64,000 bases of DNA from Thalia democratica (taxonomy: Eukaryota): NCBI GenBank assembly GCA_965202585.1, contig OZ241826.1, positions 72,788,001 to 72,852,000 of the forward strand. Direction: 5' to 3'. Of the stretch, positions 3,301 through 53,771 are shown one piece after another. The notes under the pieces are model-generated. The model was not told where the DNA came from and did not search any database. It was given only the letters and a program-made list of their open reading frames with translations. The position numbers and the translations under genes are program-made. Position 1 is the first letter of the stretch; every line of letters starts with the position of its first letter.

Positions 3301-5380
3301 AAAAACTAGTATGCAAGTAAAAAAATGTTATGTAATAACTTCGACGAAAAATGTTTATTTATATATAATTTATTTTAATAATTTACACAGTGCAAAAACA
3401 GACTGTAAGTATTTGTGTTTTAAAAATCTAGATAGATTATGATCAGATTTTATTTTGTTACCTTGCAATAATCTATAAAGCATTATAAAATAAGTTACTA
3501 AAATTTATTAGGTGCACTTAATATTAATTTATTATTTGCTTTTTTAACATTTTTTTCATAAAATTAAACTAACATATTCTGCAAAAAAGACTCTTAACTT
3601 TGTTTTATAAGTCATACTTGTCTTTTATTTCAAAAAACGACCTTTGTCTTTGAAAACTATAAAAATGTTACGAAATTAGTTATGAAACCCAATGAAGTTG
3701 AATTTCTTATCATTAAAACAATACTAAGACACGTGTCAGAATTACGATTAAAGATTAAAAATGGTATGTGCTAAAAGTTATAGATTAAACTTCCTTTATC
3801 GTTACACAATGACTAAAATTAAAAACACTACTCCCTAAAAAATTTTAACTATCAAAAAAGATTGTAGTCTTACAAATTTGAACTTTAGGAGTTAAATTAA
3901 AACTTCCTCTAAAAGTTTTGCAATTATACCGTAGCTGAAAAGCTGATTTAAGAAGTTATAGTTACATAAATTTTTTATACTAATTACTTAATAAGTACTT
4001 TTAGCTATACAAAAGGTCTGAAACGGTTTTAATTGAATTAAAGTTCAAAATTTCTTATATAACAGAAATTAGAAAATAATTCTTATTATTGAATAGATTT
4101 TTAAGAACAATCAAACTTACTGTTGCAAATAGTTTTCTTATGAACACAATCTAAAGTAGTTTATAAAAACTGAAAACAAGCCAATATGCAAATGGTAATT
4201 GGTTACTGATTTTATGTTGCTTCACAAAAAGATTAGCTGTACAGTTCAGCTATGTTAGTAAAAACAAATTTGTTTTGTAAAATATAAAATGAAAACTACT
4301 TACTACTTTAAAAAAATCATAAATTAGCTGTTTTTTTTACTTATGTCAGTAGCAATGTATTATTTTTACTTAAAAAATAAATTAAATAAAAAACTTTGAA
4401 GTTAAGTTTTACACTTGAATTGTTTTGTGTTTTTTTATATTTTAGCCTTTTAAACAGAAAATTTAGCAAAATAATTTATTCAGAAGAAATTATTGTTTTT
4501 TGTATCAAAAAATAAGATAGAATATTGTATATAGTTAGCCAATGCAACACTGCAACAGGTCCAAGCGAAAACATCTGACAAAGTATGACTTACGATAAAC
4601 TGTTTCTTAGTTTGATATATATAAATTAGTTTTGTGTAAATAGTATTATTTTAACACAAAAGGTCTCCACAAAGTTTTTTTTGGACACCATACTAATAAT
4701 AATTTTATTTACAAAAAAACAACGACGTTTCACCCGAAATTGGGATCTTCAGGTGTGAATAGTAAAAATAAATGATGACGGTGGACAACTAAATACAAAG
4801 TGTAAAATAATTTATATAATCAAATTTATAAAAATCAATACGCTAATTTAACATTATTGTTAAAATAGACAAACATAGTATATGTATATATTTATAAATT
4901 AAAGTAAACTGTTAATAAAGAAGTATTTAATAATTGAAATAACTGGTGTTACTTGGGATAGTTCATGTATTTTTACGTTTTAACTAAAGTTGAGAAACAT
5001 ACTAGTATATTTGTAAAAGAGACTGTAATTTGTTTTGTTAGTCTATAGAAATTTTCATAAAACTATACCAAACTACAAAACTATTTTAAAATTAAGTTTT
5101 TGGTTTTTTAACCAGCCAGTGCATTTTAATTATATTCTTTAATTTTAGTATTAAATTTGAATTATATAACAGAACTTACTAATTTTTTTAAAAAGATTGT
5201 CATTTTCTTACTTTTAAGACTCATAAAGCTTTACTAAACTGTGTTTATTTACGTTTCATACAAAAAAGTCTCATACAGCGCTAGTATGTGGGAAGAAAGC
5301 TATAAGAAGCTCATAAGTTGTTTGCAACACGTCAGAATTTTCACAAATTTGGCATAAATTTAGGTAATTTTGGCACGTCG

Positions 5381-5394
5381 GTTGCCATGACAAC
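5381..5394. promoter_or_regulatory. RFX X-box
   Basis: GTTGCCATGACAAC, 1 mismatch from the palindromic GTTGCCATGGCAAC, in a CpG-rich patch. CRE palindrome TGACGTCA at 5448-5455. Confidence 0.6.
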
Positions 5395-8300
5395 TTTAAA
5401 CCGGGTAGCACCGAAAGTTCACTGCTAATAAAATAAACATGTCGCTATGACGTCATAAGACCGGTCTGATGGCAAGCCGAGCGTGAAAAGAGAATGTTTA
5501 TTTAGATTGCAAATTAACCCAAGTTTCTTTGATCTGTGTGCCACCATTAAAAACCTTGCGAAATCGAACCACTTTCCCGAAGTTTAATTCGCGGATATAT
5601 GGGCAATGCAGTTCGATGTTTGTACGGCGATTACAATTAGCATTCTGCCTGATTGAAATTCCGCTCTAAAAGCCATTAATTATAGACACTGTTTTGTTTT
5701 TTCTGCAAATATCTTTCCGGTTGCGTTTGAAATTGCAAAGAAGCTTCTTGCAGTTGCGCTTACATGGTGTTAGTAAATTGACCCTATGTGTTGTTCTAGG
5801 TGAATTAAAAAAAAAAATTAAAACATTTTGTTTTTTGACTATAGCTATTTGATCTAAAATTTACGAAAATTCATAAATAAAACTCATTTTTGTTTTCTAT
5901 ATCCTAGTAAATCTATTTGCCTAATTATAAATGATAGTAAATTAATAATTTTTTGTGAAATTAAAATAATCAAATAGCTTATAACTCTATTGCGCAACAA
6001 ATAAAAACATTTCAACTTTTAGTTGTACTTTTTCTAACGCACTTGATATTAAAACTTTGGTTTTGTTATATTGTTCCACAATTATCAAAAAAAAAGGTTA
6101 AAAAGAATGTGTTATAAAGCAGCTTGTTTGTAAAGTCAACTGAATCAAGTGTACCGGTTCTGTTTAGATTTTACTTTAATCAAGTTTACCTTTGCAACGC
6201 TAATCTTGTTTGATCACTTCTACTCGGGCGTGAAACGGTTTGCATGATGCGAAATTAATTCAAATCAAATACCGAAATGAACAAGCTTTTTTTTAATGAG
6301 CTGCTGCTAATGATCAATTTCCTACGTTTAATACTTGTTAATGAAGGTTTTATTGGATTAAAAGCGCGCTGCTAGCATTGCAAGTGTAAACAAAATTTCC
6401 ACCTAAAAACGCTAGCTTGCAATAAATACACCTTTAACGCGAGCATATCGAGCTCGGCTTTTTGTTTCAGTACCAGTTAATCCGGATATTTCTAATTTCA
6501 TTACGATATTCAGATGCTAATGCCTCTCGTACGTAGAACAAGAAGAACTTAAAAAATGCATCGGTTTCGATTTGGCAAGAAACAAAGCCTTCATTTGAGC
6601 AACGTTAGCTACCGTCGTAGGACATTAAGTCCAACTTGAGCTTATTGTTCTTAAGCACAGCCTGCAACTAATACACTCGAGCACGGTTAAAAGCCTGTAT
6701 TTAAAACATTTGCGGCAAAATTTACGGTCTGAAACTTTCAAGCAAGTATGCAAGAATTTATTTTTCGAAAACTAAGCAAGATAACAATTTGATATATTTT
6801 TTCTCAACAATCATGTATCTGTTAGTAACGATTTTAGGTGGTTAAGAAATGGTTTTTTAAGTGTATTTAAAGTCAATAAATTTTGCTATCATTAAAACAT
6901 TGTATTTTGTTTAAGATTAAGCGTAAAATTGAAATGTAGACATTAATAATGAATTAAAAATAGTCATAAATTTAAACTATGACATAAAATTTTGTTTAAT
7001 GATATATTATGCACAACAAAAACGTTTTTTAATTGTTTGTGCATACATTTTTAAGCAGTTATAGCAAATTATATACATACAAAAAAAATCCACAACCTGA
7101 AAGATAGTTTTTATTGTACTTTTAAGTTTTTAGCAATAAAGTCTGATGTAAGTAAGAAAAAATGTAATAAGTTTTTCTAACATTACCGATGTTCTTTAAC
7201 GATACCTACGATTAAGCGTTCTCACATTTAGATAAAGCAAGGGTTTGATAAAATATATGAAATTTAATATATGTTACTTCGATACGTTTAAAATTCATTA
7301 GTATAATCGTGCGTTTCAGTTGGCACAAACTTTCAAACGACTTTTCACAGAATACTTAGCACTTATAAATATTCATATTGGTGTCGCGCACTTCTGCGGT
7401 CAGCGGCTAATGAAAAAGCGAGGAAATTTTCCTCAATTTGCCCGCCACAACAAACACCAAACGAAATACACAATCGAGTCAGTCAAGTATATTGGCTGCA
7501 AAGTATTTTTAATAAAAAGTAATGACCAGCGCAGCACGGCTACAAATTCAAGCAATGCTGTCGCGTGTGACGTAAGCCCTCGTGGAATTTGTGTTGAAGT
7601 TATGTGCACAAAATTCTGTTTCTAATACATGCTAATGGCAGCACTGCCTAACAGTCGATAAAGATGTTTTGGGTAAAGTTTTTTAAATATGTTGCTATCT
7701 ACATAAAACATACTTGTTTGGTAGTTAAATTTAAGAAATGCGTCGTATTAGTTAATGGTTTATGTTCAAAGATTACAAAAGTACTTCCATAAAAATAAAT
7801 CTATAATTAAAACTTATTTACATAAAGCAAACTACTTGATAATTAAAAGTAACTAATACGACTCGTAAGACAAATATTCATAAGACTAGAGATTGAGTTT
7901 ATAAAATTGTTTGCGACATTTTTTCAAAAATAATTTTAAAACATAATCTTGCAAAGAGGCATAAAAATAGGATATCACTTTTCAAATTTAGTCATTTACT
8001 TGAACAAAACGATGTCAAAACAAGAAAAATTTGGTAATAAATTTTGTCAATCAACAAACATCAGTTAAAGACTCCTTTGTTTGTAGAGTCAGTTAGTAAA
8101 AGAGTAGGTCAAGCAGAGTACAACATTTTTGCTTGTTCTTTAAAAAGTTTCTTCAGTAAGATTTAAATAAAACTTTAATTACTTTTGTCAATTTATCTAC
8201 ATAGATTTTGTCAAAGCAATTTTTTGTGTTTTAACACAGCTGCTACAGTAATTAAAAAAAAAAAAGTTTGCTTCTTTTGTTATCCACTTTATCTTACCAA

Positions 8301-10649
8301 AGAAGAAACAGGGAGTAACATTGTTTAGATAAGTTTATTATTTTCTATTATTTTTTCCAAAATTCTACATGAAGAATTTAAACATACGAAAGCGTCGCGA
8401 CAGATAAAAAATCAAGTTAGTGATAATTTTGTAATTTTCGATAATTCATAGGTGTCAATTTAAATCGACATTTTCTTGATTCGCCAACTTTCCGATCGCC
8501 CGCACTGCTGTCGGCTCGCAAACCACCAGTTTGAAATTTCCATCAAGAAGTGAAAACACTCGTGCTTTCGAGTGCATTGTGCCCATTGTTGCCGTCCACC
8601 TCTGAGTTTGATTAAGTGGCTGGCCAAGAGTGGCCGCTTCGTTTGTCTTAGTTGCTACTTGTTGCTTGCTGTGCTGCACTTTTTGTGTGCGGCTTTGTGA
8701 AATATTTCTTCAAGCAATTAAGTCTGATTGTGTGATTATAAATGTTTCGAATGTTGAGGGTTTGTTTGCTACAACGTTTGTGGAAGTTTCGTTCGGGTTA
8801 ACAACAGTATTTACGCCTTAAACACCAGTATGATATTTAAAAAAAAGTAAATTTATAAAATACATCGAGTTTTTTTTTGTAAATTCAAGTTTTCTTAAAC
8901 TAAACTAAAACCCCAAAATCACTATTCACACATTCAAAACGAAATCATTTTCACCTCGATGTAAAATGTTACCATTTTATTAATCAAGGTTTATTCTTAA
9001 AACCACGATAAACATTAAATCATTGATTTCGATTGTGATTTTTTGAACTTTTGTATCAATTTGTTCTTTTAAATATATATATTGCATTAAAAGATTTGTT
9101 CTGGTCTACAAAAGCTTTTCATAAAAATAAAAGCAAGACATTAAGCAATGTTAATAAATTTTACAGACAGCTCTTACAAAAAATTGACAAAAATAGCAAA
9201 TACTAAAAAGGTATTCTATTTAGACAATTCATTAAAACAAACGGGTAATCCTATAACTTTTCGTCGTAAAATTTTAGCCAATAACAAATTCGTTAGAGCG
9301 TAAATGTTTTTTATTTTTAATGTTAATGAGTATTTTTTAGTTTTAAGGGTACTTTGAAAGTTATTATTGAATATCCTAAATGAATAATTACGAAAACATC
9401 AAAGCAAAAGATTAAAATCTGTTTTTGATGCTCTCTTATTTTTCTGGTAAATTTTTTTTTTCAAAAATAAATAATGATATTTCCAAGTTTACAAAGATAA
9501 AGAGTTTAAATACTAAATTCCCACTCACAATTATTTGACCTGTGAAAAGGTGTTATGTGGATTTAAGTGCCTTTACAAATGTATTCACTTAAAAATAACC
9601 TAAAATTTGACCTTTAATTGATACTCATGTCTATTTTTAAGTTGCTATTATAAAACATGAGCTAAAAAGACAGTACATTTTATGCTTAAACCATGTTTTT
9701 TGAAGTATAATTATTCTTAGAATAAACGTAACTTAGTCAAAAAACATTCGAAGATAGTTATACAACTCGGCTTTTATTTCATACATAAACGATATCGCAA
9801 ACAATACTTTATCAATACTTTTTTTATCTTTGGCTTTTTTATATATACAGTAAGGGTGATTATGGTAAAAACACAATTAAGTTATGGAATAAAGTTAAGT
9901 TTAGGTGGTTTTGTAAAATACATTTTTGTTTGTAGTGTAAACCACACAATATACACTGTAATAATGTAAAATTAAATAAATTTCAACCTCTCTGCGAACT
10001 TTTGAAATAACTTTTATTTATCCTAAATGTAACCTGACCTTTACCATCTCTTAAACTATGAAATAAATACCAGCGTAAAGCATCTATAATAGCTTACTTG
10101 CATAATGAATTGTGCATAATTTTAATAGAATTTCAATTTTTTTACAGTTTTTATCTAAGCTTGCATAATATGACATAAAGAAGTACTCGCTCAAAAAAAA
10201 CATTTTATCATTTAATCTACTTTATAATACTATTTGTTATTTACGATTAAAAATACTAATAACTCTGAAACTTTATTCTTATTTCATTTAAGCAAAAATC
10301 AATCAAAATAGTTTTGAACTTAAAAATAAAATATTAACGAAGTATTATAGCAAAATACGGTAGAAATTCCTTTAAAGAAGTTTTAAACATATAATAGTTC
10401 TATTTATATGTAACTTTTCTAACTTTTGTACATACAGACCTATTGACAGAATAAACTCTAATGCTATCAAACATTTTCCCACGGAGACAAATTTTTTTCT
10501 GTCACTATCGTGAACATCAGTGTGAAAATATGAAAATAAGTATAAAAAGAACAGTGAGCCCCAAATAACGGTCATTACCAAAGTGTATAAAGTTACATTT
10601 TTTCAAAAGCCAACAGTTTCTCTAAACTAAATATATCTTGTTACCAACC

Positions 10650-10749
10650 GTCTCCTAGGCAACAAAGGGTCTTTTTGTGCCACTCGGCTGTCGTAGTGAT
10701 ACAGGGAATGATTAGGAACAAATTCCGTCACGAAGGTTGTCATAGTAAC
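10650..10749. promoter_or_regulatory. Pair of RFX X-box-like motifs
   Basis: GTCTCCTAGGCAAC (10650-10663) and GTTGTCATAGTAAC (10736-10749). Confidence 0.5.
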
Positions 10750-11540
10750 AGTTTGAAGACGTCTCCAGATACGCATCTGACAATTTTTTATGGTCCTATT
10801 TTGAGTTTTATTTGTTTTAAACCGGAGCAATACTTTAGTATTTTTTTTTTTTTTAATACTGATTTTTTTGTAATAATTAATGGAGATGATATAAAAATCT
10901 GTTTTATAAAACTGTTTTTATCATAAAGAAATACAACACTGAATCGTTTAAAATATTTTGGTTATAGTTATCAAACTGAATGTATTTCTTTATTATTTTG
11001 TCTATTTAAAGATGTTGAAAATTTTATATAGAATTATGTTCTAAGTCATATTTTAATTTGTTTTAAATTGTTATATAAACGTATTTAAGTCATAAACCGA
11101 TTTTTTTAAATAAATAGTGTTCAAATTGAAATACGACTATGTTTAAAACACGTACTAAAAAATTTATCAATTAAAATGTTAATAAACTTCTACAATAGCA
11201 AAGCAAATACAATAACTTTTCTTAAAAATTATTCTAAACTCCAAAACAATTGTTTTGAAAAAAACAACATTTGTTTGAAAAATTCGTTTCTCTTACAAAA
11301 TCACATTGACATAAATCACCAACCGAAAATCTTACGTCTGCGATTGAATAAACAATCACCATTAGGAATTTTTCCCGTTTGAACATCGCGCATCGTGACA
11401 ATCAGCTCATTGTGACGCCGACCGCAAATAGGAAGCGACACGTCATCGAACAATGCTCAAAAACCAAAATAATAGGAAACTGGGGTTGCACAGACCGGGT
11501 GAAAACAATTAGCTACCGTTTCCAAGCGACAGCCGAGGAT

Positions 11541-11591
11541 GTTTCCATGACAACCTGGCGAAGTCAGCCGTGACTTGGTTGCGATGGCGGC
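11541..11591. promoter_or_regulatory. RFX X-box plus a weaker second site
   Basis: GTTTCCATGACAAC (11541-11554) and GTTGCGATGGCGGC (11578-11591) in a CpG-rich, promoter-like patch (about 11330-11730). Confidence 0.5.
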
Positions 11592-14082
11592 TAAATCACG
11601 TCGCTATTTGGTTTTAAATCGTGTAAATCAACAAGTAGCCTTAAACGGCCATTGTGACTTCATTTGAGCTTCCTGTTGTCTGGAAGTTTGCGAAATATTT
11701 CTCTTTTCAGCATTAATCAGATCGTAAAGTGAGAAATGAGTAAACAATGGAAAATATAGGAATTGTTTTACTCACTTGCACTTACAAAAACTTTTACTTG
11801 AGAAACATATAAACTTTATTAACATGGTTTGAAATAAACAGAAGTTTCAGAAAACAGCTAAAGAATAGAAGAAAAAAAAATCCAGTGAAAAATACTTAAG
11901 CACCAAGTTTTAAATTATATATTTTACTAAAGATAGTTTATCATTATTTACAAAGTTTTTTTTTTCTCAAATATTTCATAGAACAGAAGCTTTTTGTCTT
12001 CACTTAAATGAGTCAGGCATAAAAATTCTTCAAAGTTTTCTTTAGTTTTACGAAAAATGTATCATTATCAAAACTCGATAATAAAGTGAAAGGAAAACGT
12101 TTTAATTACTACATAAACCTGTTTGGCACAGATTACAAAACTTTATAGGCATCAATTACGTTATATGTTCCCATGATCTGCATTTAAAAAAACGCTTGAA
12201 ATGATTTTAACTAGTTATTGTTTTAAATGTTTTCTTATATTTTTTATAGAGGTCTTTAAGGTGTTTACAAAAATTTATTTTGTGTTACTAGGTGTGCATT
12301 CTGGAGTTATTAAAATAATTAAACTTAAAATACGTACTTTTGATTAAGCTATCTATATATACTAAACTACGGAAAATTCTATTTGTACAATACTTAATAT
12401 AATAACACAAATACGTAAAACAAAGAATTTTTTAAATACGCCTTTAATTAACATGTCTCTTCTCGACTGAAAAGATCAATAAATGCATTTCAAACCTTTT
12501 TTCATTATTAACTAATTGCAATTTATTTTCTGCGTTCTTTTCAAAGTTAACATTATTTGATATGGCTTAATATATCTATATAGAATAGTGTTACTACAAA
12601 ATAAATCCAAGAATTGCGATAACACTTTTATAGTTGTGTGAGTTTTACAATTAAACTAAAAAAGAGAAACAAAACAGTACTGACTAAAACGCTGCATTTT
12701 AAAATACCAGCTATTGGTCGGAAGTATTTATTATTATCTGATTGATGGTATTTACTTTAGAGTTTAACAATGTAGTGATGTTAAGAAACCTTTTAGCAAA
12801 ACAAAGACTACGTAGCTTTTAATCGACAAATTTGGTTGGGGAGCAAATTTGACACAAGCTGAGACTCTAACAAAAGAGAAGTATGACTCGTCATATCTTG
12901 AAGATCGAAACTTGTGATGTCGCAGATTACATCTCGATTGAACAAATAGGCGTAAAATTAGCACCGGACGCTGTGACGCAATAAACACGCATCGCCGCAA
13001 TTATGACATCATAAGTTTGCTTCATCAAAGAAGCCGCGCAGCAAACAACAAAAAATAAAGGAAACTTACCTAAAAAGAAACAAAATTGTATATACTTTTT
13101 TATAGTTAACTTTTTTAAACTATGTTAACTTTTTTAAAAACGTAACAAAATCTGATATACATTATACGTTATTTTTAGCGGGCTAGTTTCTATTATGCTT
13201 CAAATTCATTTTATAGAATAATATTTGTTTTAAAACTTGTTTGTGTGTGTTCAAAAACTTAGTTGAAACATATTTTTGCGAAATAGCACATAAATGCCAA
13301 TCAAGATATTTTAACAGCCGCAAAACAAGATCAAAAGATTGCAAGCATGTGAAAGTGTTCTTATCGAAAAAAGCAAAAATAACTATGAAGCTGAGCAAAC
13401 AGAAATTTTTGGTTTATTAGCATTAACTTATCATATCTCGTTACATATTCACCTTTGTAATTTGTTGTTATTTTCTGCTGCTAAGCCCTGTGCATATAAA
13501 CTTGCACGCATTACAGGCTGTTGATTTCTGGGTAAAACATGCTCTGCAAGCGCAGTCGAGAATGTTTGCTTTGAATTTAAAAAACATCTCAGAGACGAAA
13601 CATGTTTACGTTTCGCAGGTGAAGCTTCGACCCGCGGAGGCCTCTGTGGTGCAAGCGCTACACAAAAACAAGTTATTTTCGAGGAAATTTCACTCTGACC
13701 CCTGCTGGTTCATAATAGAAGCTCTGTCGCAGTAATGGCCTCATTAGCAGTTCGTGACTATGCCGACGCCGCTGCCTTTTGGTGAAAAATAGTTTCGATG
13801 TTGAACGTGAAAAGTTTACTGTCAGTTTGTCAGCAGCTCAAATTGTGATGAATATTCTCGTGGCGTACGTGTAAAGAAACGTTACGGTGTTAGTGTGATG
13901 TGAGCTGCTTAGCACAATTGAATTAAAGGAAATCGGTTGTCAAAGACAAAAACTTGAATTACCGTACGTGATGTTTTTTTCAGTTTAAAAAAATGTTTTT
14001 ACTAATATAGGCATTTTACGTTATTTTCCAACGTTTTTACAAAGATATTTTTACTATTTCGGCGAATTTAATACGATTACTA

Positions 14083-14151
14083 ATAAGTTACGTGAGTTGT
14101 AGTTTTAAAATATAAGTTACGTGAGTTGTTCTTTTAAAATACAAATTACGT
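14083..14151. repeat. 29-bp tandem repeat, about 2.4 copies
   Basis: ATAAGTTACGTGAGTTGT(AG/TC)TTTTAAAAT twice, plus a partial third unit. Confidence 0.85.
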
Positions 14152-14459
14152 TTTGTTCTAAAGTAATTAAAGCTAAATATTTCAACAATGAGAACATGGA
14201 AGAAAAAATTGTCTTATTTAAAAAACTAATAATATAAAACTGTTAAAATAACTTAAGTTTTTATATTCTAATAAAAAGGTTGAAAGTACTTTGACAAATT
14301 ACATAAAAATATTATTATAGTAGCTGTTTTGTTGAAAATACCTTTGGCTTAAAATATGAAAATCTAAATAATTCAAGTCACAGTATTCATAAACAAAAAA
14401 AAAATTCAACTGCTAACCAACACAGAAGCGCTTTTAATCCACGTGACGTATACATGCTA

Positions 14460-14618
14460 ATTGCCATGGCAACAAGAACCCGACTGCGGACGACGGTTAT
14501 GAGTAATAAAGGCTACTTGGCACAGTCAGCGGCGAAATGCTCCTTCGCGATTGGTCAACCCGTAATAGTGGTCATCAAAGCGTAAAAAGTACAACTGAGG
14601 GGTCGGTTCCATGGCAAT
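14460..14618. promoter_or_regulatory. Pair of RFX X-box-like motifs
   Basis: ATTGCCATGGCAAC (14460-14473) and GGTTCCATGGCAAT (14605-14618); E-box CACGTGAC at 14440-14447. Confidence 0.5.
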
Positions 14619-17020
14619 TTACCCAGCGTAAGTGATAACTCGAGAAAAAATACGGCTCCTTGACTAGTTAATTCGAAGATAATTTCGTTTCCATGCCACC
14701 GTAGGTTAATCGGACCGCGGGAGCAGGTAATTGGAAAATGCGCTTTTGTGATTGGTTTATTTTTCTGGCCACTGGAGTATGACGACCTCACATCTCAGCG
14801 GTGGCATCGAAACAGAGTTTTGGGAAATTGACGCAACTATGCTCGTTTATTTGTCACTTATGATTTTTTTCTTTATCAAGTTGCATAAAGTTTACAATCA
14901 ACTTATTTTTTTTTTTTTTTTTAAAGTTGTAAAACTTTAAAATTAATTTATCGAGATGTTTCACTGTATTTAACCTGCTTATTTTTTTAGATTTTGCATA
15001 GAAAGCCAAGCTATAAAACAAATTAAAAGAGTATTAAGTTATTTCGCTTTTAAAAATATTAACGTTTTAACTTTTTTGTTAGTAAAGATAAATTAAGTTT
15101 TTTGATAATAATTAGTCTTGGCACTTTTATGATAAATTATTTTTATACTAAAACGCCTATTGGTACTTGAATAAATATATTGTTATAAAAAACAGTTGGC
15201 TAAAAGTTTTTTGTAAATTTTAAATGATAAAAACCAGTAATTTACACAAAAAAAAAAGATAAAATCAAAGCAAGCTACTTGCAAAATACCAACAATTGGC
15301 GTTTTTATTGTTAGAATTTCCCCACAAAAACTTCTCAGCAATCAACTGTTCGATTAGCGACGCTTTTTATTGTTTATCTCTTTTCTTATTCAACACTTAT
15401 TCCCACAAAACTTTTCTTGTTTGCCAACAAATTTAACCCTTTTTTAAAACTGTTTCCCCACATATTTCAGATTTTGGCATTATCCCTTGTTACAACTTAT
15501 GCTTTTAAATTACGTAATAGTTTTTAAAAGTTTTTGAGTTTATAAAAATAAAGCAAAGCTTTTCAGACAATGCAGTAATAAAGTGTTATTTTTTGCAAGT
15601 AGTACACCTTTTTCCTAATACTCAAACAGACACATACTCATTATGTACGTAAAGTTTGAAAATAAGTCCAGACATATTTTGGTTAGCAATCTTATTATTA
15701 TTCTCAAACTTTAGTCTACGCTTCCATACACTTTTAAACACAAAATTAGACAAGTTTTAAACGAAAGCTGAGCTAAAGCAGGCCGTGAAAAGAGTTGTTT
15801 GTATCTGAAAGTATTTAATTAATTGCCGGTGCTTTAAAAAGCCCTTAGTTACTCAATAAAGTGATTGTTAACAACTAAAGAGGTGGTTGAAAAGCAATTT
15901 ATCTGGAAGATGGCACGAATTTCGAGCTATTAAATCAAGTTTCAAAGCTACTTAATGTTGCATTGTATTGCTTAATGTCTTTTTACTGTCATTTAAAGTG
16001 AGCAGTTTGAAATTTTATACAGATTGCTTGATCGTTTTAGCCGTCAATTTTTTAATTCAGGCTGGAAAATAACTATTTCAAAACTGCTTATACTTTGTAT
16101 TGTATGAATTTGTAACAATAAGTTATGAGCTTTAAAGTCATTCTATAAATAGTTTTTTTTAATTTTAATTCATTAAGTTGTTTTATGTTTTATATATCTT
16201 TAAAACGTAGAATCTTTTCTTTAAAATTCTTAAAAAAACCCTGTAAACTTGGTCTGTTTTTAATAAATACTAAGTTTTTTGTACAGTTAAAAGCTTAATA
16301 ACATATAAAAACTATGTCCGATTTAGTTCCAGTTTATTAATTTAAGCAGCGAAAACTTTTACAACGATTAATTTTGCAAGTGCAAATTTTATCATAGGAA
16401 AAAAATTTAATGAATATTTTAAATATAATTTTCTTTTTCAATTATAAAACAGTATAAGCTTAAAACTTTTTTGTTAAGCTTTTATACAAACAAAAATGAA
16501 AACTGTATTTTTATTTAGATAAAAAAAAGAAGAAAGTTCATGATTCACAAACAATAAATAGATAAAAAAAAACTACAAAATAACGTACTTTTAAATGTTT
16601 AATATTAATTATCACTAATTTTTTGACAAATTATCATTTATTTTAATGTAATCAAATTTTATTTACGGTAAAGTGAAAGCTAACTAAAACTTTAATGGAA
16701 ACAAAAACAACAGTGTACCAGCACTGTCAGCTATTCAGCTTAATAAAAAGAGTCTAAAGGAATTTTTCAGAAAGTTTTTTCTACCAGTTTGAAATAATGT
16801 AACACACCTAAAAACTCTTTTATGATAAATCTAAATGAGAAATTAAAAGTTACAGGGCTTTCTAAAAGATGTTTTTGCCAAAGCAAAGAATTGTTTCACT
16901 AAAAAGAAGTATTTTATGACGTCACAAAATCCACCGAGAAATCATCGATCAGCTCTTTCACCTCAACTTACAGCTCTTGCAGTGTCGAATTATTACGTCA
17001 CAAAGACGTTCTCGTCAGAA

Positions 17021-17461
17021 TCAGGTGTCGTCTTTTCCGTACCTACGGTGATTCAGAGCGACGGCTTTTCGGCTCGCGTGAACTCTTTGAGCGGGGGATC
17101 TTATGCGTCTGTACGGGTTTCGCTTCTTCCTGCTCTTATTGTTTATCCGCACTTCGCGGCGACCTTCCTGAACTTTCTTCCTTTTTTTCTTAAGATGCTC
17201 CTCTCGTTCGAGGTCCACCGAAGTGATCCTCGGGTGCTTGCAGTCCTTGTGGAACGAGATGTCCGGCACAAAGTCCATCTTTCTTCGCATCTTCATCACC
17301 CGCTTGCTGGAGTACCTCACGTTGAAGTTCCTCCACTGCAGGTAGTTCTTGAAGGCGTCGTTGACCAGGTGGTAGTTGTACTCGTGCTTGCCGTGGGGAA
17401 TCACCTTGCTGAACTCACGGTACTGGCATTTGCGCGGGAACTTTCGCCAGTATCTGGTTTT
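17021..17461 (-). CDS. FGF-like last coding exon (core C-terminal half plus basic tail)
   Basis: Acceptor TTTTTCAG ending at 17462; open for 146 codons to TGA at 17023-17021; GC-rich; includes the track ORF 17021..17404. Confidence 0.88.
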   Translation of the reverse strand, partial: KTRYWRKFPRKCQYREFSKVIPHGKHEYNYHLVNDAFKNYLQWRNFNVRYSSKRVMKMRRKMDFVPDISFHKDCKHPRITSVDLEREEHLKKKRKKVQEGRREVRINNKSRKKRNPYRRIRSPAQRVHASRKAVALNHRRYGKDDT

Positions 17462-20400
17462 CTGAAAAAGTTATTGTTATGAGCTTGTATAAGTTAGTCT
17501 TAAACTAGTTTCAAATTATGTTTGAAAAAAAAACCATTTGTAAAATAAAATAGGTTACTAAAATAGGTACATTAATTTGTTAGTTATTGCTCGTATATGC
17601 TACTTTTGAATTTTACAAAAAAGTTCTATGCAAGTAGGCTACCTCAAAAACCACCAACCACCACTGTAAAACAGTTTTCCAAAAGAAACAAGGATTATTA
17701 AACTACGACCTATATGAGCACAGACATAACATTTTCAAAAATTGCATTCTTAGTGCATTTTTTTGTTTAAAGGCTACCTGTAAGAAACCACCAACACACA
17801 CAACCTTTCATTAGCGGGCACTTTAACATGTAAGTAAGCTTGTGAAAGTACTGAGGTGTAAATTACACGAGTAAAGATATGCGAGCTGTATAAACATGTT
17901 GTTATTTGTAACTCATCCATGTACCCTTGTTTAATGCACTTCACAACGGTTTCAAGACTTTGTTTTTACTTTAACAATTTCACTTCAACTTAAAATTTTT
18001 GATAGCTATATTTTGATTTTGTTCTTAATTATTTTTTAGAAATTTTTTATGAACTAGCGTAAACAAAGTAAACGTCAGGAGTCTAGAGAAAAATTTTTTT
18101 GCTGGTTTTAAATCATTGATATTTTGGCATATAACTGAAACTGTCTAAATTTTAAAAAAATTAAATATTTTTTTCAGGCAAGCTGATTGGATATTAAAAA
18201 GGAAAACGACATTTCACGCTTCAAGCAGAGAAAATTTACTTACAGAATTTTAATGCTAATTTGGCTCATACATTCGTGACTGATTTGTTTAATGTTGCTA
18301 AAACGAAAATACTAAACACATTTTTATGTGTTATAAGCAGCATTTGAAAGATACGACCTTGAAGTTCTTATCAAATCAAATAATTCAATTTTGCCCTTCG
18401 ATGCCTCGTTAATGTATTATAATAGTTGTACAAACCTTGAACACGGGCCGTCTTCTGTTGCTCCTTGTCTGACACAAGGTTCTGTTGGACTTCGTGTCTA
18501 TCAACCGCACTGTAGAGTAAACCAGATTGCCCTGCTTATCGTACATGGATTTGCCGTTTACTATGGTGAACATATCTGAAAAACAAAATAATGTTTTAAG
18601 GAAAATGAGATTAGTTAAACTTTAAAATAAATATGTTTTGTGCTTATCGGTTAGTAAGTAAAACTTTTTGATTGTGAAATAAAAAATCCGTATAGCTAAG
18701 TATAGGTGTTAGAAAATAGAAAAGCTAATAGCTGTTATAGTGTACAATAACAGTGAAGTACTTTTAATGTTAATAAAATGTTTTTAATCTAAATATGAGT
18801 AACCTAAGCTAGACTATTTTGATAAAAAACTAAACTTATTATTCTCTTTTTCAAACTACAATACAGCTTGTTTTTTAAATGTTAGATAAAGTAATGAGTT
18901 TTTATAACTAAAAATTGACAAAATTTCAGATTGCAAGAGCTGTTTTATACAAAACTAGGATAATTTAAGATAATCCGGCAAACATTTGGTCGCAGATTTA
19001 TCTTTAATCTCTGCTGATTATAAACAAAAAATGAGTCAGTAGCTAGTTAACACTTGTTAACTGCAATGTTTCACGGATTGTTTAGTTTTTGATTTAAAGC
19101 AAATATAAAATAAAAACTGCAATGTAGTTTGATTGAAAGGTAACTTTTGTGTTAACTAAGCTAGATCTATGAAATTTTTTTAATGTTTTACTGTACTACA
19201 TAAGTACTTTAACAAATTTCAGCAGATAAATACTTTATAGGTTTCATTTTCTTAAATATTGCTGAAATAAAGATATAAAATTCTTAGTATAGAATTTTAA
19301 GGGTTATTCGGGAAACGATATAGTTAGTTATGACAATAAAATATAAATATTGAATATCTTACAATATACATAAACTGGTACAACACTTTATTATTTTAAA
19401 CTACAATGACTACTTAAACTTTTCAAAGAGTAAAAAATAACATTAACAATGTAAAGTACAATGTAGAAAATAAAAACTTACAATTAGTGTTTCCGTTCAT
19501 AGTATCTTTTGGCTTCCTTTTACTGAACTTACGACTTCTGTCGGCAAATAAAATAAATTGCTTGTCCTTGTGTAACAACGAGTATAGATGGCAGTTCTTG
19601 CTTATAACCGAAGACGGGTAGTGCTAGATAGAAAAATAATTGAAAAATGTTGCTTAGTTTTTCAAACCTAAGTAAACAGTTCTAGCTTTAGCTTTTGTGT
19701 TTAACTTTTCACTGTTTTCTGCATTCTATTATTGATTTTATGTTGTAAACGTTTCTGTTTTTAGTATGCTTTTTTAATTATGAACAGTTGGAAAGTCGTT
19801 TTTTATTTACTAAAATATTTTCTAGAAATTTATGATTTTTACAAAACACTATTATAATTAACTATAATAAACTCTAAACAGTAGACTAAAAAAAAAATTT
19901 TTGTAGTTTTTGTTTCAAACCCCATGGTTTTTAATACTTAGTATACATTCTTAAGCATAGATTTTAACTAAAAACTTAAAAAGTAAAAACTATGTTTTTT
20001 AAGTAAAATATAGTACAAAAATTTTTTAATTGTAAAAATAGCACAAACTAAGGATTATTTTTTTAAAAAACTACTTCTTTAAAACATTTTAGATTGAAAC
20101 ATCTTGATTAAATTTTAATTACACTGAAGTAAAGATTACTTATTCAACACATCTATTATCTAAAGAACTTTAGTTATTAAATAAAAGTAAAAAGTTTCAT
20201 TTTTAGCTCAAAAAATTTGTTTTAATTAGTTCAATGTCAGATTTGAATTAAATTTTAAGATTAAGAAAACCTTATGTTTAAGTTTCAAATAGGGCAATAA
20301 GTTATTCTTTTATTTATAGTTTTACCACTTGAAATCAGCTACAATTGTTACATATTGTCATACAATATAAGTGCATAACTTCTGATATTAAAACATCAAA

Positions 20401-20552
20401 GACATCCTTCAAAGAATATAAACGTTTGATTCTTTTTCAATTGGTTATATAGACCTACAAGATTTCTTTTATTTTTCAAAACTAACTTGTTGTGCGGCGG
20501 AAGCACTTAGGACACTGTGGAGAAGGATAAGTGTAATTTCGAATATCATCAT
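17021..20552 (-). CDS. Divergent secreted FGF-like protein, 262 aa; complement(join(17021..17461,18436..18575,19482..19623,20487..20552))
   Basis: Four exons splice in frame with canonical GT-AG sites (phases 0,1,0). Product: MMIFEITLILLHSVLSASAAQQ|HYPSSVISKNCHLYSLLHKDKQFILF...NTNY|MFTIVNGKSMYDKQGNLVYSTVRLIDTKSNRTLCQTRSNRRRPVFK|KTRYWRKFPRKCQYREFSKVIPHGKHEYNYHLVNDAFKNYLQWRNF...KMDF...DDT*. It has a signal peptide plus FGF-core-like motifs (hLYS, VRLI...LC, CxYxE, NY..L..A, terminal F). Family assigned by eye; subfamily not assigned. Confidence 0.75.
18436..18575 (-). CDS. FGF-like coding exon 3 (equivalent of the conserved middle FGF exon)
   Basis: Acceptor TTTTTCAG ending at 18576; 140 nt, phase 1 in, phase 0 out; donor GTTTGT at 18435. 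Confidence 0.82.
19482..19623 (-). CDS. FGF-like coding exon 2
   Basis: Acceptor AG at 19625-19624; 142 nt, HYPSSVISKNCHLYS...MNGNTN+T; donor GTAAGT at 19481; phase 1. Confidence 0.8.
20487..20552 (-). CDS. FGF-like coding exon 1 (signal peptide)
   Basis: Acceptor AG at 20557-20556, ATG at 20552, MMIFEITLILLHSVLSASAAQQ, donor GTTAGT at 20486; phase 0. Confidence 0.75.
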
Positions 20553-22187
20553 TTTCTGTAAAAAAGTTTATATGAAATCAATCATGTGTTTAAGAAGCGT
20601 AAAAAGCACTAAGTGCTAATCAAAGCCTTCCAGCAAGTACTTTAATTGGTCCCCAAATATCAAAGCTAAAAGTCTTTTAGTTTGAAAACTCTTTGTTTTT
20701 TTATTTGTGATAGTTTTATTACAAGTGGTCGAGTCATTAAGTTTCAAAAGTGTTTTATTTTTTATTGCAGCAATTTGTTTTTCAACCTTATGAAAACATT
20801 ACACTTTATGTAAGGCAATAATATATGGCAATAGTTATAAGCAATTTTTTATAATTTTTTTTACTCAACTGAAAATATAAGTGAACTGAAAGTTTAAGTA
20901 TGCAAAGAAACAAAGTTTTACAGTTAAAATCGACAAAATTCAAGGTAAAAAACTAATTATCATAAACTTGTTATAAATTGTCGCGACGTGATTAATAATT
21001 CATAATACTTGCAAAGTCTGCTATGCTATGTTTGGGGAATTAAATCAAGATACATTGTTTATGAAATTGATTGATTAGTAAGTTTTAGTGCCAAAAACAA
21101 AGTTTAAAAGATAAAAACTGAGCTAGTAGCTATTACCTAGTTAGTAGCGATTATCTTTTAGTGCGTAGAAGCTTAAAGCTATGTATATTATAAAAAGTTA
21201 AAGTGCATAAAACCCTTTTGACTATTTTCTAAAGACTAGAAGTAAAGTTGATTTAAGGAGGTTAAAGTTGTATACTAACTAATGTTAGTTTAACATACTA
21301 AATTAAACAGATACTTGTTCCAAAAATTCTAGAAAAATAATAAACAAAAGAAGTTAATACATTTAAAATCACATTTTCAGTTGCAAAACAAAATTCTTTT
21401 GATGTTGCATTGCAGCTTTGAAAGTCGTACGTAAAATCTCATTTAGCGTACATTAAAATGTACATTAAGTAAAAACGTTTTATACGAAAACATGACACGA
21501 ATAACGTTTAGCACTAATACAATACTAAAAAAGCTGCTTTACTAAAATATAAACTATTTTTTTGTCTTTATTTAGCTTCAGAAACAGTGAAGTTTAGTAA
21601 AATCAAGTACATAAATGATCGAACTCAAAAGGCATTTACAAGCAAAAAAATGCTGTCTTAAGCAGTTTAAAGTTTTTATATTTATTAATTTTTAGATATC
21701 ATTTAAGGCAACTTCCTCTATTGTGCTGCCAAGTAATTCACAACTTTTTGTTTATGTTAATACGCATGCACAAGAAAATCGCGCACGGCGGTCCGGGCAG
21801 CGCAGAACCTTGAAAGAGAAATTCACAGGTAATTACAAATAACTACACAGCAACCCCATAAGAAAGTAAGAAGATTCTGTTGCCTATTACACGCCACCTC
21901 TATAAACAAAAACGTAACACGATGCCCGGGTAGAGAAAACAAGTTTGCAGCGTCCGAAAGTCTTCGTGAATTTTCGGTAAACGTTAATCTTGTTTAAAAG
22001 TTTATTTTTGTCACAACGACTTACAAACTTCTAAGTTATTTTAGAATAGTAATAAGTTTGTTAAGAAATTTTCATTTGTACTAATAAACTTGCAAAAGTC
22101 TTATCACCTTACTATATTTAAAAACAGCAAGAAACGTCGATAACTTTTACCCAACTACAAAGTATATACAATTAAAACAAAACTTAC

Positions 22188-22295
22188 CTCTTTTAACTCT
22201 AAATCTGTTGGCTTTTGGTTTTTGTATAATTCTTCTTTTTCTCACAGTTTTACACAAACACATGACGTTTCTACGTGATCCCTCATAAAAGCTTT
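22188..22295 (-). other. Probable non-coding 5' exon of the FGF-like gene
   Basis: Strong minus-strand donor GAG|GTAAGT at 22187. Coding exon 1 is preceded by an acceptor, so an upstream exon is needed. TATA-like TATTTATA at about 22330-22323. The 5' boundary is approximate. Confidence 0.35.
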
Positions 22296-25200
22296 GAAGA
22301 CAAGTATTTAAAAAGAGATGATTATAAATACTGATAAAGTAAACAAGATTTCAGAGCTTTTACCACGATAAAAATCTTTTATTATTTATTAAGATATCGC
22401 AATTGAAAATGAAAAATAATTTTATTAGCTACTGTTTACTTAAGTCATTATTTTGACGTTTGTAAACATTGCAAATTTCGTACTTTTTGACAGAAATATC
22501 CTTTTTTCAACTTAAAAATATTAAAAATTAATAATAAATACATACTTATATCAAAATATTTTCATAAAAAAATTTCATTTGTAGATCATCTCTAAGATCA
22601 AAACTTTCTAAAGCATTAACTATAAACACATTTTTTCTGTTGTGATATATCAGTAACTTAGGTACAAACTATAAAATCAACTCTACAAGAACTTTTATAA
22701 AACTTTTATACCTATTTAAACATCAATGCAAAACAACTTCTAAAACATTCTTTTTATTCAAAAGAAACATCAAAACTTTTAAATTAAAACGAAACGATAA
22801 TGGTTTTACTACAACCTTGTAAAGGCAACCAGCTTTATCAATTACACGCACTGATTAAGGTTTTATTTTGTTGTGAAAACATTCAGTTAGCCGACATTTA
22901 TGTCGCTCTATCTTTAGCATTGAAACACTTTTGAAATTGCAACTGTTGTTTATTTATTTCAATTAAACTGGTTAACTTTGAAAAAAAAAATCAAACATTG
23001 TATCACCAATTTTGTTTAATTATATTTGTAACGGTTTAAAAAGAATATAACCTTCTCAAAGTATACAAATTATATATTTATAGTTACTTTACTATGTATA
23101 ACTTAAAGTTTTTATTTATAAACTTAGACTAAATAAACAATATTTATCTAAAAACTAAAATACTGACTTTAATGAAAATAATACTTTAATGAAAGTATTT
23201 CAAAAACTTTTTAAAGCATGTGTAATGAACTTAATCATTGTTTAGATCAGTATACTTTTTTTTTAATTTTAATGTTGTTTCGGTTTCTAAAGTGACTTAT
23301 GTTAAAACTAAACTAAGTTTAGTTCATTTTATCACCGGTCAAAAAAACTTGAACGAGAATAAAAGAAAAAATGTTGCGAGCCTTTTTCAGTAACGTTTTT
23401 TTTTGTGCGCAGCGAAAAGTGTAAAAAGGGACGAAAATAAAGAAAAATTGAAAGTTTTCTACAAGTTAATTAAAATATAAGTAGGGAATTTTTCACGAAA
23501 TTGGAGTTTTGATGTTTCTACTAAAGTTAAAATTAGTTTTACCTTGTTTCTACCATTTTTTTATGTATATTGATAAAATATTTCTAGCATATAGCTTAAC
23601 TACAATGCTTAATAATAAAGTACAAAATTTATCCAACATTTTTTTTTTGCTTTCATAAAGTACATTTTATAAAACAGCTTCTATTTACTTACTTATGACT
23701 AGAATTTACCAAAAATATATAAATTTTTAAATAGTTTATGATTGAGATAAAACAAGCTTTGAAAAATTTATCACTTAAACTATCACTTAAACAATGTTTT
23801 CATATTTAAAATTATTTGTTTATACTAGTCTTTTTTTATTATTAAGTATAAGTTTAAATGTAAATAAAATTTATAGTAAGTTACAACTATTTTAAAAGTA
23901 TTTTTAAAATCTTTTTTTTTTAATTTACATAAATTACTAGTCAAAAAAAAAAATGTTTTAGATAATATTGCAGATAGTTTTAAAGATCAAATTTATTTAT
24001 AAACAACTTTTTTAACTGCAATCTATGTTTTTGTTTTATTGTCTTAATTACATATCAATTTAGATTAGTTACGGAGTATAACTATTTTATTAAAATGTTT
24101 TTACAATTATACTTCGAAAAATAAAACATATGTTGTCCGTCTTTGTAACGTAAAATTATTTATGATATAAGTTTAATGGTTTTAAACTTATGTTAGCTAG
24201 ATTAATAGAAAATTATAGATAGGTTTTATTAGGTTAAATTTCAGCAGTTATTAAAAAAAATGCTAATACTTTACATTAAATAAAATTGATGAATTTATAC
24301 TTTATGCATTAATTTTTAAAAATGTTATGCAATGATAGCTCACATAGGTATTTGTTTAAAAAAGAGACCACAAAACTTCGTTATTTAAATTGTTCATAGA
24401 CTGAAATCTTAAAACAATAGACTCTGCTAGTCGAGATTAACAATGACAATAGCTTAAGTAAGCATAACAAAGGGAAAAGAGTGTACTAAAGTGTTTAGAT
24501 TTACGTCAATTTTCGCGGCAAACTTGAAATCGTTGCAGTTGTAATCCCGTACTTAGCCAACTGCACAACGCATGGTAGCCTTTTGTGCAAGAGTTTGTAG
24601 TAACTTAAAGTGATGCTTCCAATTTGCAAGACAACAATGTATATAGGGCTTCAATTGTGAACTTTGTGTCGGGTTATGCTAAGTGGTTCGGGGAAGTCGA
24701 CTCTTGTTGTGAAATATTTCAGTAGTCACGTTTATGTGAAATGTTAAAGTTAACAAATTTTTTTATAAAACTTCTACTTTACTTGGTGTTGTTTTCATTT
24801 GTACTGTTTTTCGCAATACTTTGTGTCATAGTTTTTATAGTTTTTAAGTACAAAATGTTGACTGTTAATAGTAAATGTTAGATAATAGTTGATGCTCAAA
24901 AAGTAGATATGTTTCTTTAATGGTATTTAATTCTTTAAGTACACGTTTAGCAAAATTTTAAATTAAACATTTTGAGTTAATTAAAAACTTTCTTTTTAAA
25001 AAACTTAATTTTTAACTAGAAGTTTTAAATAAAATTAAACATAGTTAACAGGAAGTTTTCAGTTTTTGAAAACGCTTTATTTACAAACTAACGTAGAAAG
25101 CTATTTTTTAGAAAATAAAAATAACTAGCTTAAGTATTAACCTGAAGTATAACTTTTAAAACAGCTATTTTAATATGTTTGGTTTATAATTCGTAAAAAT

Positions 25201-52732: not shown

Positions 52733-53317
52733 TAATAAAGGTATTAGACACGCAAATCACGTTTTAATTGTTTCCATTGTTCGTTGTGCGCTGATAAAGG
52801 AATCGTGAGAGTTTTGTTTGTGTTGATTTTCTTGTGACGCTGGCAAAAACTGCTTTGTTTTGTTTCAAATTGAATAGTCTATGTAGAACATTTTAAATTT
52901 TAAATTAATAACTTAAAACTGACAACCAGTGACAGTAGATTGCATTTTTTACATTAAATGAATAACTTCAAGTGTTTTACTGGATCAATAATCGAGTCTT
53001 AACATTAATAATTTGTTTTGATTCGCATAATCTACTTTTCGTAGCTTTTTTTACTAGAGCTCAATTTAATTTGTAAAAAACAATTAATTGAGAGCAGTTT
53101 ACATTTGCTGCGTTTTTTAACTTCAATCAAAGCTAGTCGTTTTATGTACTTATACTATATTTTCACTACAATTTCTTACACAGAGTCTGTGTTTTATGTT
53201 ATGTAAATTATCGCTTATACAATATAGTTTTGATTATAAAAAACTAAAGTGTAGCAACAAACTCTTTAATTAATATCACATTTAAAACTTCAGACAAACA
53301 CTTATTTAAACAAAGTA

Positions 53318-53771
53318 ATGGCAGTATGCAGACCTCTACAAGTGATTCAAGAAATCGAACGGGAAAACAACGAAATCGAAGTGTCGACGGTGGAATCAAG
53401 CGAGAGCAGCTCCACCGAATTGAACTGCTTACACGGTTGCAGAAGGAAGTTCAAAGAGGAAAAAGACGGAAAGTCGACGCTTCAAACCGTCGCTTCCACC
53501 ATCAACCGGCTCCTGCATCTCCTGGTCGCTTACAACCTCCTCCTTGTTTTGTGGGAGGCCCACTTCTGGCACTTCACCGACCCGATGAACCTCGACTTCA
53601 TGATCTGGCCGGTGCTGGTCGTGATGGCCGCGCTCGCAGGACCGGGCCTTCTGCTGATGTTTCCAAAAGTATCAAAGATAAGAGTGAACAATAGCTTTGG
53701 AGAACTTTTATTTTTGTTGAATCCAGTTATCCTGCTTATATGTTCTTTAGACGCTTTAAGTTTTAAGCCAA
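53318..53771 (+). CDS. CWH43-like exon 1
   Basis: ATG at 53318, open to the donor GTAAGT at 53772; phase 1. Confidence 0.8.

Follow-up and report, generated by a model that had tools for sequence, protein, structure and literature searches.

An RNA-supported gene hidden from open reading frame tracks in Thalia democratica encodes a putative secreted protein with possible ancestry among the fibroblast growth factors

An expressed five-exon gene

The stretch of DNA considered here, called the window throughout, comprises 64,000 nucleotides from the salp Thalia democratica (assembly GCA_965202585.1, contig OZ241826.1, positions 72,788,001 to 72,852,000 of the forward strand). Its minus strand carries an expressed gene of five exons, one non-coding and four coding. 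We lean, with modest confidence, toward reading the product as a secreted ligand that descends from the fibroblast growth factors (FGFs) and would share their beta-trefoil fold. An earlier note, made from the sequence alone, had proposed four minus-strand coding exons for a 262-residue protein. A rebuild by script from the window sequence reproduced that model, with a coding sequence (CDS) of 789 nt that specifies 262 amino acids plus a stop codon, and with three introns between coding exons that all run from gt to ag, have pyrimidine-rich acceptors, and fall in phases 0, 1, and 0.

Coding exon 1 (20487..20555; all features of the gene are on the minus strand) contributes 3 nt of untranslated region (UTR), the ATG at 20552, and 22 codons, and leaves in phase 0; positions 20552-20493 within it encode a hydrophobic leader, residues 1-20. 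Coding exon 2 (19482..19623, 142 nt) leaves in phase 1 and bears Cys33 together with the segments HLYS and FILFAD. Coding exon 3 (18436..18575, 140 nt) lies between a phase 1 intron and a phase 0 intron and bears VRLID and TLCQT, the latter with Cys104. Coding exon 4 (17021..17461) includes the stop codon and carries KCQYRE (Cys128), NYHLVNDA, YLQWR, FVPDISFHKDC (Cys190), and a Lys/Arg-rich tail, whose sequence reads RKKR at 17120..17131, inside a conserved RKKRN. The 3' UTR spans 16631..17020, its 3' limit being approximate, with AATAAA at 16663-16658 and again at 16642-16637. Exons stand out in G+C content, at 38-52%, against 22-29% for introns and 26% for the window. As the earlier note had remarked, the open reading frame (ORF) track at its default length cut-off reveals the last exon alone; ORF tracks hide an RNA-supported gene at this locus. 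Antisense to coding exon 4 lies a 188-aa ORF (window 16916-17482, plus strand), which we regard as a shadow ORF of a G+C-rich exon; the frame that agrees with conservation and splicing is the one on the minus strand.

Transcripts bear out the three junctions that had been proposed from sequence. When aligned to the locus, RNA contigs from two runs of a single marine metatranscriptome sample skip each intron precisely, joining 17461 to 18436, 18575 to 19482, and 19623 to 20487 (CT..AC intron ends on the plus strand), while two DNA runs span the introns without any such joints. The same RNA contigs, and blastn of mRNA contigs L009, L010, and L011, add a non-coding 5' exon at about 22188..22328, with its donor GT at 22187-22186 (gtaagt), spliced to 20555; the RNA contigs show a loose end at 20557, and the 5' limit of the exon is simply where the RNA contigs stop. 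The distance from this exon to the ATG exon downstream is 1.6 kb, and the earlier four-exon model lacks it. The RNA contigs carry an element, TATTTATAA, at their 5' end, in the region of the non-coding exon (22188-22328, minus strand). In the orthologous mRNA contigs L009, L010, L011, and L012 the CDS is uninterrupted and its ATG is preceded by in-frame stops; L012 terminates in poly(A).

Features of the protein

The first 20 residues, where the earlier note had placed a signal peptide, are hydrophobic, with a mean Kyte-Doolittle value of 1.76. They end in ASAA, and the leader is kept in orthologues; by these properties it is probably a cleavable signal peptide, and the protein probably secreted. 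A core of about 170 residues follows, predicted to be mainly beta-strand; four cysteines within it (Cys33, Cys104, Cys128, and Cys190) are invariant. The tail of about 65 residues is 36% Lys plus Arg, and the isoelectric point of the whole protein is about 10.8. The RKKR of the tail matches the proprotein-convertase consensus R-x-K/R-R and is a candidate site of cleavage. FGF23-type processing occurs at an RxxR site, and the conserved R-K-K-R in the C-terminal part of the window protein is likewise a candidate furin-type site; unlike the site in FGF23, it sits in a basic tail behind the core, where cleavage is presumed purely from the motif.

A small family under purifying selection

Searching for homologues of the last exon returned P0001 (261 aa), and a search with P0001 returned P0002 (262 aa) and P0003 (271 aa), all encoded by uninterrupted CDSs on 1.1-1.4 kb contigs from marine metatranscriptome-type samples. 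These three full-length orthologues are collinear with the window protein across all three junctions, at identities of 92, 79, and 56%. In comparison with L011, the ratio of nonsynonymous to synonymous substitution (dN/dS) comes to 0.10 overall, with 0.047 for the core; comparison with L009 yields 0.078, and with L012 the synonymous sites are saturated. Because dN/dS lies at 0.05-0.10, we take the gene to be functional, and that it is real and functional we regard as nearly certain.

The genome holds one paralogue, at G000:C4:52207180-52213757 (L026 5630-9210, minus strand), with the same exon phases and 63% identity to the window protein in the core; its first exon, encoding the leader, was not located. 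P0003 is closer to this paralogue (75% identity) than to the window protein, as is P0006, both from ocean samples. In another species, the last exon of a genomic copy (L036) begins at the same phase-0 acceptor; within the aligned core its identity to the window protein is about 62%. Searches for a third paralogue or a bridging copy, made with a hidden Markov model (HMM) and with the most divergent relative, returned the C1 and C4 loci and otherwise only chance-level matches. Judged by these searches, the family is small and lineage-restricted: this genome has two paralogues, and all other relatives come from open-ocean samples.

Canonical FGFs of the same genome

Several canonical FGFs could be identified in the same assembly. 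An FHF-type gene (Fgf11/12/13/14-like; G000:C1:65659827-65661375; L001, L002) has a core that lacks the first internal intron and keeps the second; loss of ici1 with retention of ici2 in FHF-type Fgf is published for ascidians and appendicularians (PMC11733497). Like the open-ocean origin of the related sequences, this intron pattern agrees with a pelagic tunicate as the source. FGF-C (C1:15.68 Mb; L020, L004, L028) has a C-terminal tail rich in Lys, Arg, and Glu. At G000:C6:38.84-38.92 Mb and C7:15.14 Mb (L005-L008, L022-L025, L030-L033) lie several FGF copies that are nearly identical and have three core exons apiece; for the copy near C6:38.844 Mb the middle and last exons are seen, with no first exon within 10 kb. 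The alignment of canonical FGFs used below consists of six cores, five of them assembled from genome exons (the FHF-type gene at C1:65.66 Mb, FGF-C, two C6 copies, and one C7 copy) and the sixth taken from the FHF mRNA of a related metatranscriptome contig; FGF-B (C7:52.75 Mb; L021, L003) was identified and left out of it.

The central exon of these canonical genes measures 107 nt, with a phase 1 intron before it and a phase 0 intron behind it. As a positive control, most canonical exons score 18-32 bits when the Pfam FGF model PF00167 is run exon by exon, and the FHF mRNA scores 108 bits. Three canonical exons, the first and the last of FGF-C and the first of FGF-B, go unrecognised when the model is run in this way, so bona fide FGF exons can fall below detection in this lineage. 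A word-indexed homologue search with one FGF exon of the genome returned two fragments only, and a metagenome scan returned nothing with the FGF middle-exon alignment and two loci only with the FHF last exon.

The window protein resembles the secreted FGFs of the genome (FGF-C and the C6/C7 tandem copies) in its plan, with a putative signal peptide, a core in the range of about 130-170 residues, and a basic tail; in the phases on either side of the central exon; in cysteines placed in segments that correspond to LY[VI]C and KC.F; and in a C-terminal segment of the F-[VLI]-P/HFL type. It differs from them in that its score against PF00167 is nil, compared with the 18-32 bits per exon of the canonical genes, its central exon is 140 nt rather than 107 nt, about six extra residues stand between two core cysteines, and the G-x-L and W/Y-x-A/G-F segments are unrecognisable. 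Its last exon begins 11 residues before the cysteine of C-x-Y-x-E, compared with 6-7 in the canonical genes.

Intron phases, language-model neighbours, and predicted fold

The ancestral chordate Fgf had two internal core introns, of which ici1 precedes beta4 and is in phase 1, while ici2 precedes beta8 and is in phase 0 (PMC11733497). Introns 2 and 3 of the window gene, which flank the 140-nt central exon, have phases 1 and 0, the same order and phases as ici1 and ici2, although their positional equivalence hangs on an alignment that is not significant. The FGF-like phases of exon 3, which the earlier note had pointed out, agree both with the published chordate pattern and with the canonical FGFs of this genome. 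This gene structure is evidence for FGF kinship independent of the language-model features described next.

In ESM-Atlas feature searches with P0002:23-195 and P0003:23-195, FGF clusters from arthropods, cnidarians, and chordates came first, with a score of 0.90; the top match shared 168 features with P0002 and 170 with P0003, and FGF clusters made up 48 and 52, respectively, of the 100 best matches. Lower ranks were held by clusters of fascin, ricin-B, DUF569, FRG1, and inhibitor I66, all of which we take to be beta-trefoil folds, and by one cluster without a family; the fascin, ricin-B, DUF569, and I66 clusters scored 0.81-0.84. The scores themselves are borderline. An artefact of composition is disfavoured, because generic basic proteins would then be expected rather than trefoil lectins and protease inhibitors, and the leading neighbours belong to the very family that had been put forward in advance for other reasons. 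A divergent arthropod FGF-like cluster (252 aa) is the nearest or second-nearest by features and is of similar length, the comparison being one of language-model features alone. It is mostly invisible to Pfam: just 23% of the members of the nearest arthropod cluster match PF00167, which indicates that divergent FGFs often escape the model. A search with exon 4 alone gave no usable match.

Structure prediction adds little. AlphaFold2 reached a pLDDT of 36.2 with the full-length protein and 37.7 with its core, from alignments of 9 and 11 rows that included many partial exon peptides and fragments. Its low-confidence strands coincide with the expected FGF strands beta1, 2, 4-10, and 12, which lends weak support, and Foldseek with the second model (pLDDT 37.7) returned noise.

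Alignment-based tests of FGF kinship

A series of results weighs against descent from FGFs, and we gather them here. A six-frame PF00167 scan of the 802-Mb assembly found eight places, and the window locus is not among them. PF00167 likewise gave no match at E<=10 for three exon peptides or for full-length P0001, P0002, and P0003, with the proviso that HMMER filters conceal matches weaker than about E=0.1-0.3. The profile search, whose failure the earlier note had listed among the results that would refute its reading, came back empty, per exon and at full length, and since the match that defines the family was sought and not found, membership in PF00167 cannot be claimed. Searches of all sequences in the Protein Data Bank (PDB) with phmmer and with profiles found no FGF. 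An HMM of the window family, run against 5646 ORFs, ranked true FGF exons only 802nd to 4082nd, and in the reverse direction the canonical-FGF HMM gave the family a score of about 0 bits (empirical p 0.19-0.72, 1000 shuffles each). Comparison of the family with the canonical cores by hhalign scored 12.4 against a mean of 12.7 for shuffled columns (p 0.48). Exon-by-exon alignments to the FGFs of the genome gave z values mostly between -1.7 and 1.5, with a single value of 2.55. Among 1.84 billion representatives, phmmer found the family itself with three fragments of it and nothing else. An ESM-Atlas score of 0.9 is also attained by 4-10% of shuffled proteins, and the tool is uncalibrated for parts of proteins; the low pLDDT of both AlphaFold2 models, moreover, leaves the fold unverified.

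Smith-Waterman alignment to the FHF core gave z values of 0.7-2.7. An hhalign result obtained at an earlier stage, P=0.025, derived from a poor alignment of fragments and vanished once a proper canonical alignment and a shuffled null were used. The motif resemblances listed in the earlier note (LYS, VRL..C, CxYxE, NY) did no better than shuffled controls against the FGFs of the genome, and they must be placed at chance level because none of the alignment statistics run exceeds its shuffles. The specific affinity to FGF8/17/18 suggested alongside them found no support. The PROSITE core signature PS00247 reads G-x-[LIM]-x-[STAGP]-x(6,7)-[DENA]-C-x-[FLM]-x-[EQ]-x(6)-Y; the window protein fails it, showing the C-Q-Y-R-E part alone. 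The signature discriminates poorly, as five of the six assembled canonical FGF cores fail it too.

Weighing the explanations

The lack of database annotation and of any Pfam domain might suggest that the locus encodes no functional protein and is instead a pseudogene, a chance ORF, or the source of a non-coding transcript. Against this stand an ORF preserved intact in several species and two paralogues, a dN/dS of 0.05-0.10, and spliced mRNAs, one contig being polyadenylated; as far as sequence evidence allows, these observations refute that explanation, and its probability is negligible. A far stronger competitor is a lineage-restricted, secreted, basic protein unrelated to FGFs, with a fold of its own or another small cytokine-like fold, whose likeness to FGFs is coincidence or convergence. 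Every alignment-based test against Pfam, the PDB, and the FGFs of the genome stands at chance, the 1.84 billion representatives hold no relative beyond the small family itself, AlphaFold2 offers no confident fold, and the first ESM-Atlas score of 0.90 is within reach of those 4-10% of shuffled proteins. A chance neighbour, however, would have to equal the family proposed in advance, and do so for two members; nearly all the other listed matches would also need to be beta-trefoils; and the pair of phases 1 and 0 around the central exon fits the gene structure of FGFs. We consider this explanation a serious one that probably does not hold. A beta-trefoil of non-FGF origin, IL-1-like or lectin-like for example, would account for the fascin, ricin-B, DUF569, and I66 clusters lower in the lists, but FGFs lead the lists and supply about half of the 100 best matches, the intron phases agree with those of FGFs, and Pfam matches none of those other trefoil families, which together make such an origin improbable.

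Descent from FGFs is accordingly the explanation toward which we incline, if without great assurance. The FGF beta-trefoil put forward by the earlier note keeps its backing from ESM-Atlas neighbours and intron phases, and it lacks both a PF00167 match and a confident AlphaFold2 fold (pLDDT 36-38). The protein would be a beta-trefoil of FGF ancestry that has kept the two ancestral core introns and has diverged past the reach of profile detection. It would act as a secreted paracrine ligand that its basic surface and tail tether to heparan sulphate, with the RKKR of the tail as a possible site of processing, perhaps by a furin-type enzyme. More tentatively, and with doubt prevailing, an FGF descendant under very strong purifying selection without the canonical receptor-contact segments could represent a new class of pelagic-tunicate ligand with a changed or different receptor, or else the protein could be a new secreted fold that mimics FGF.

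Surroundings of the gene

On the 3' side of the gene, window positions 5350-14850 contain nine G+C-rich islands (at least 38%, against a background of 26%) with no convincing ORF. The two islands tested are single-copy in the genome; the islands may be regulatory elements, or they may belong to a non-coding or short-exon gene. Large open exons of a neighbouring gene, one of 452 aa, lie at 53270-56069 on the plus strand. A comparison of synteny with the C4 locus found only the exons in common, and no clear coding neighbour within about 18 kb of the gene.

Implications

Tunicate FGF repertoires are strongly remodelled, with losses and bursts in appendicularians and with Fgf-L in ascidians (PMC11733497). 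Besides the secreted FGFs of this genome, the closest known counterparts of the window protein are tunicate Fgfs without an assigned subfamily, such as ascidian Fgf-L. Fgf-L is a lineage-specific tunicate Fgf that fits no chordate subfamily, and tunicate Fgf evolution is fast (PMC11733497; Satou et al. 2002, cited there). Unlike the window protein, Fgf-L has been placed as a member of the Fgf family in phylogeny (PMC11733497). Orthology of the two is unsupported, because no ascidian protein appeared at E<=0.001 among the 1.84 billion representatives. Our literature searches found no account of the FGF set of pelagic thaliaceans.

If the family is not of FGF origin, it is a well-supported orphan family of secreted proteins. 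If it does descend from FGFs, then Pfam-based catalogues overlook ligands in fast-evolving lineages, and the gene would encode a strongly constrained, lineage-specific signalling molecule, a candidate for a role in salp development or blastogenesis.

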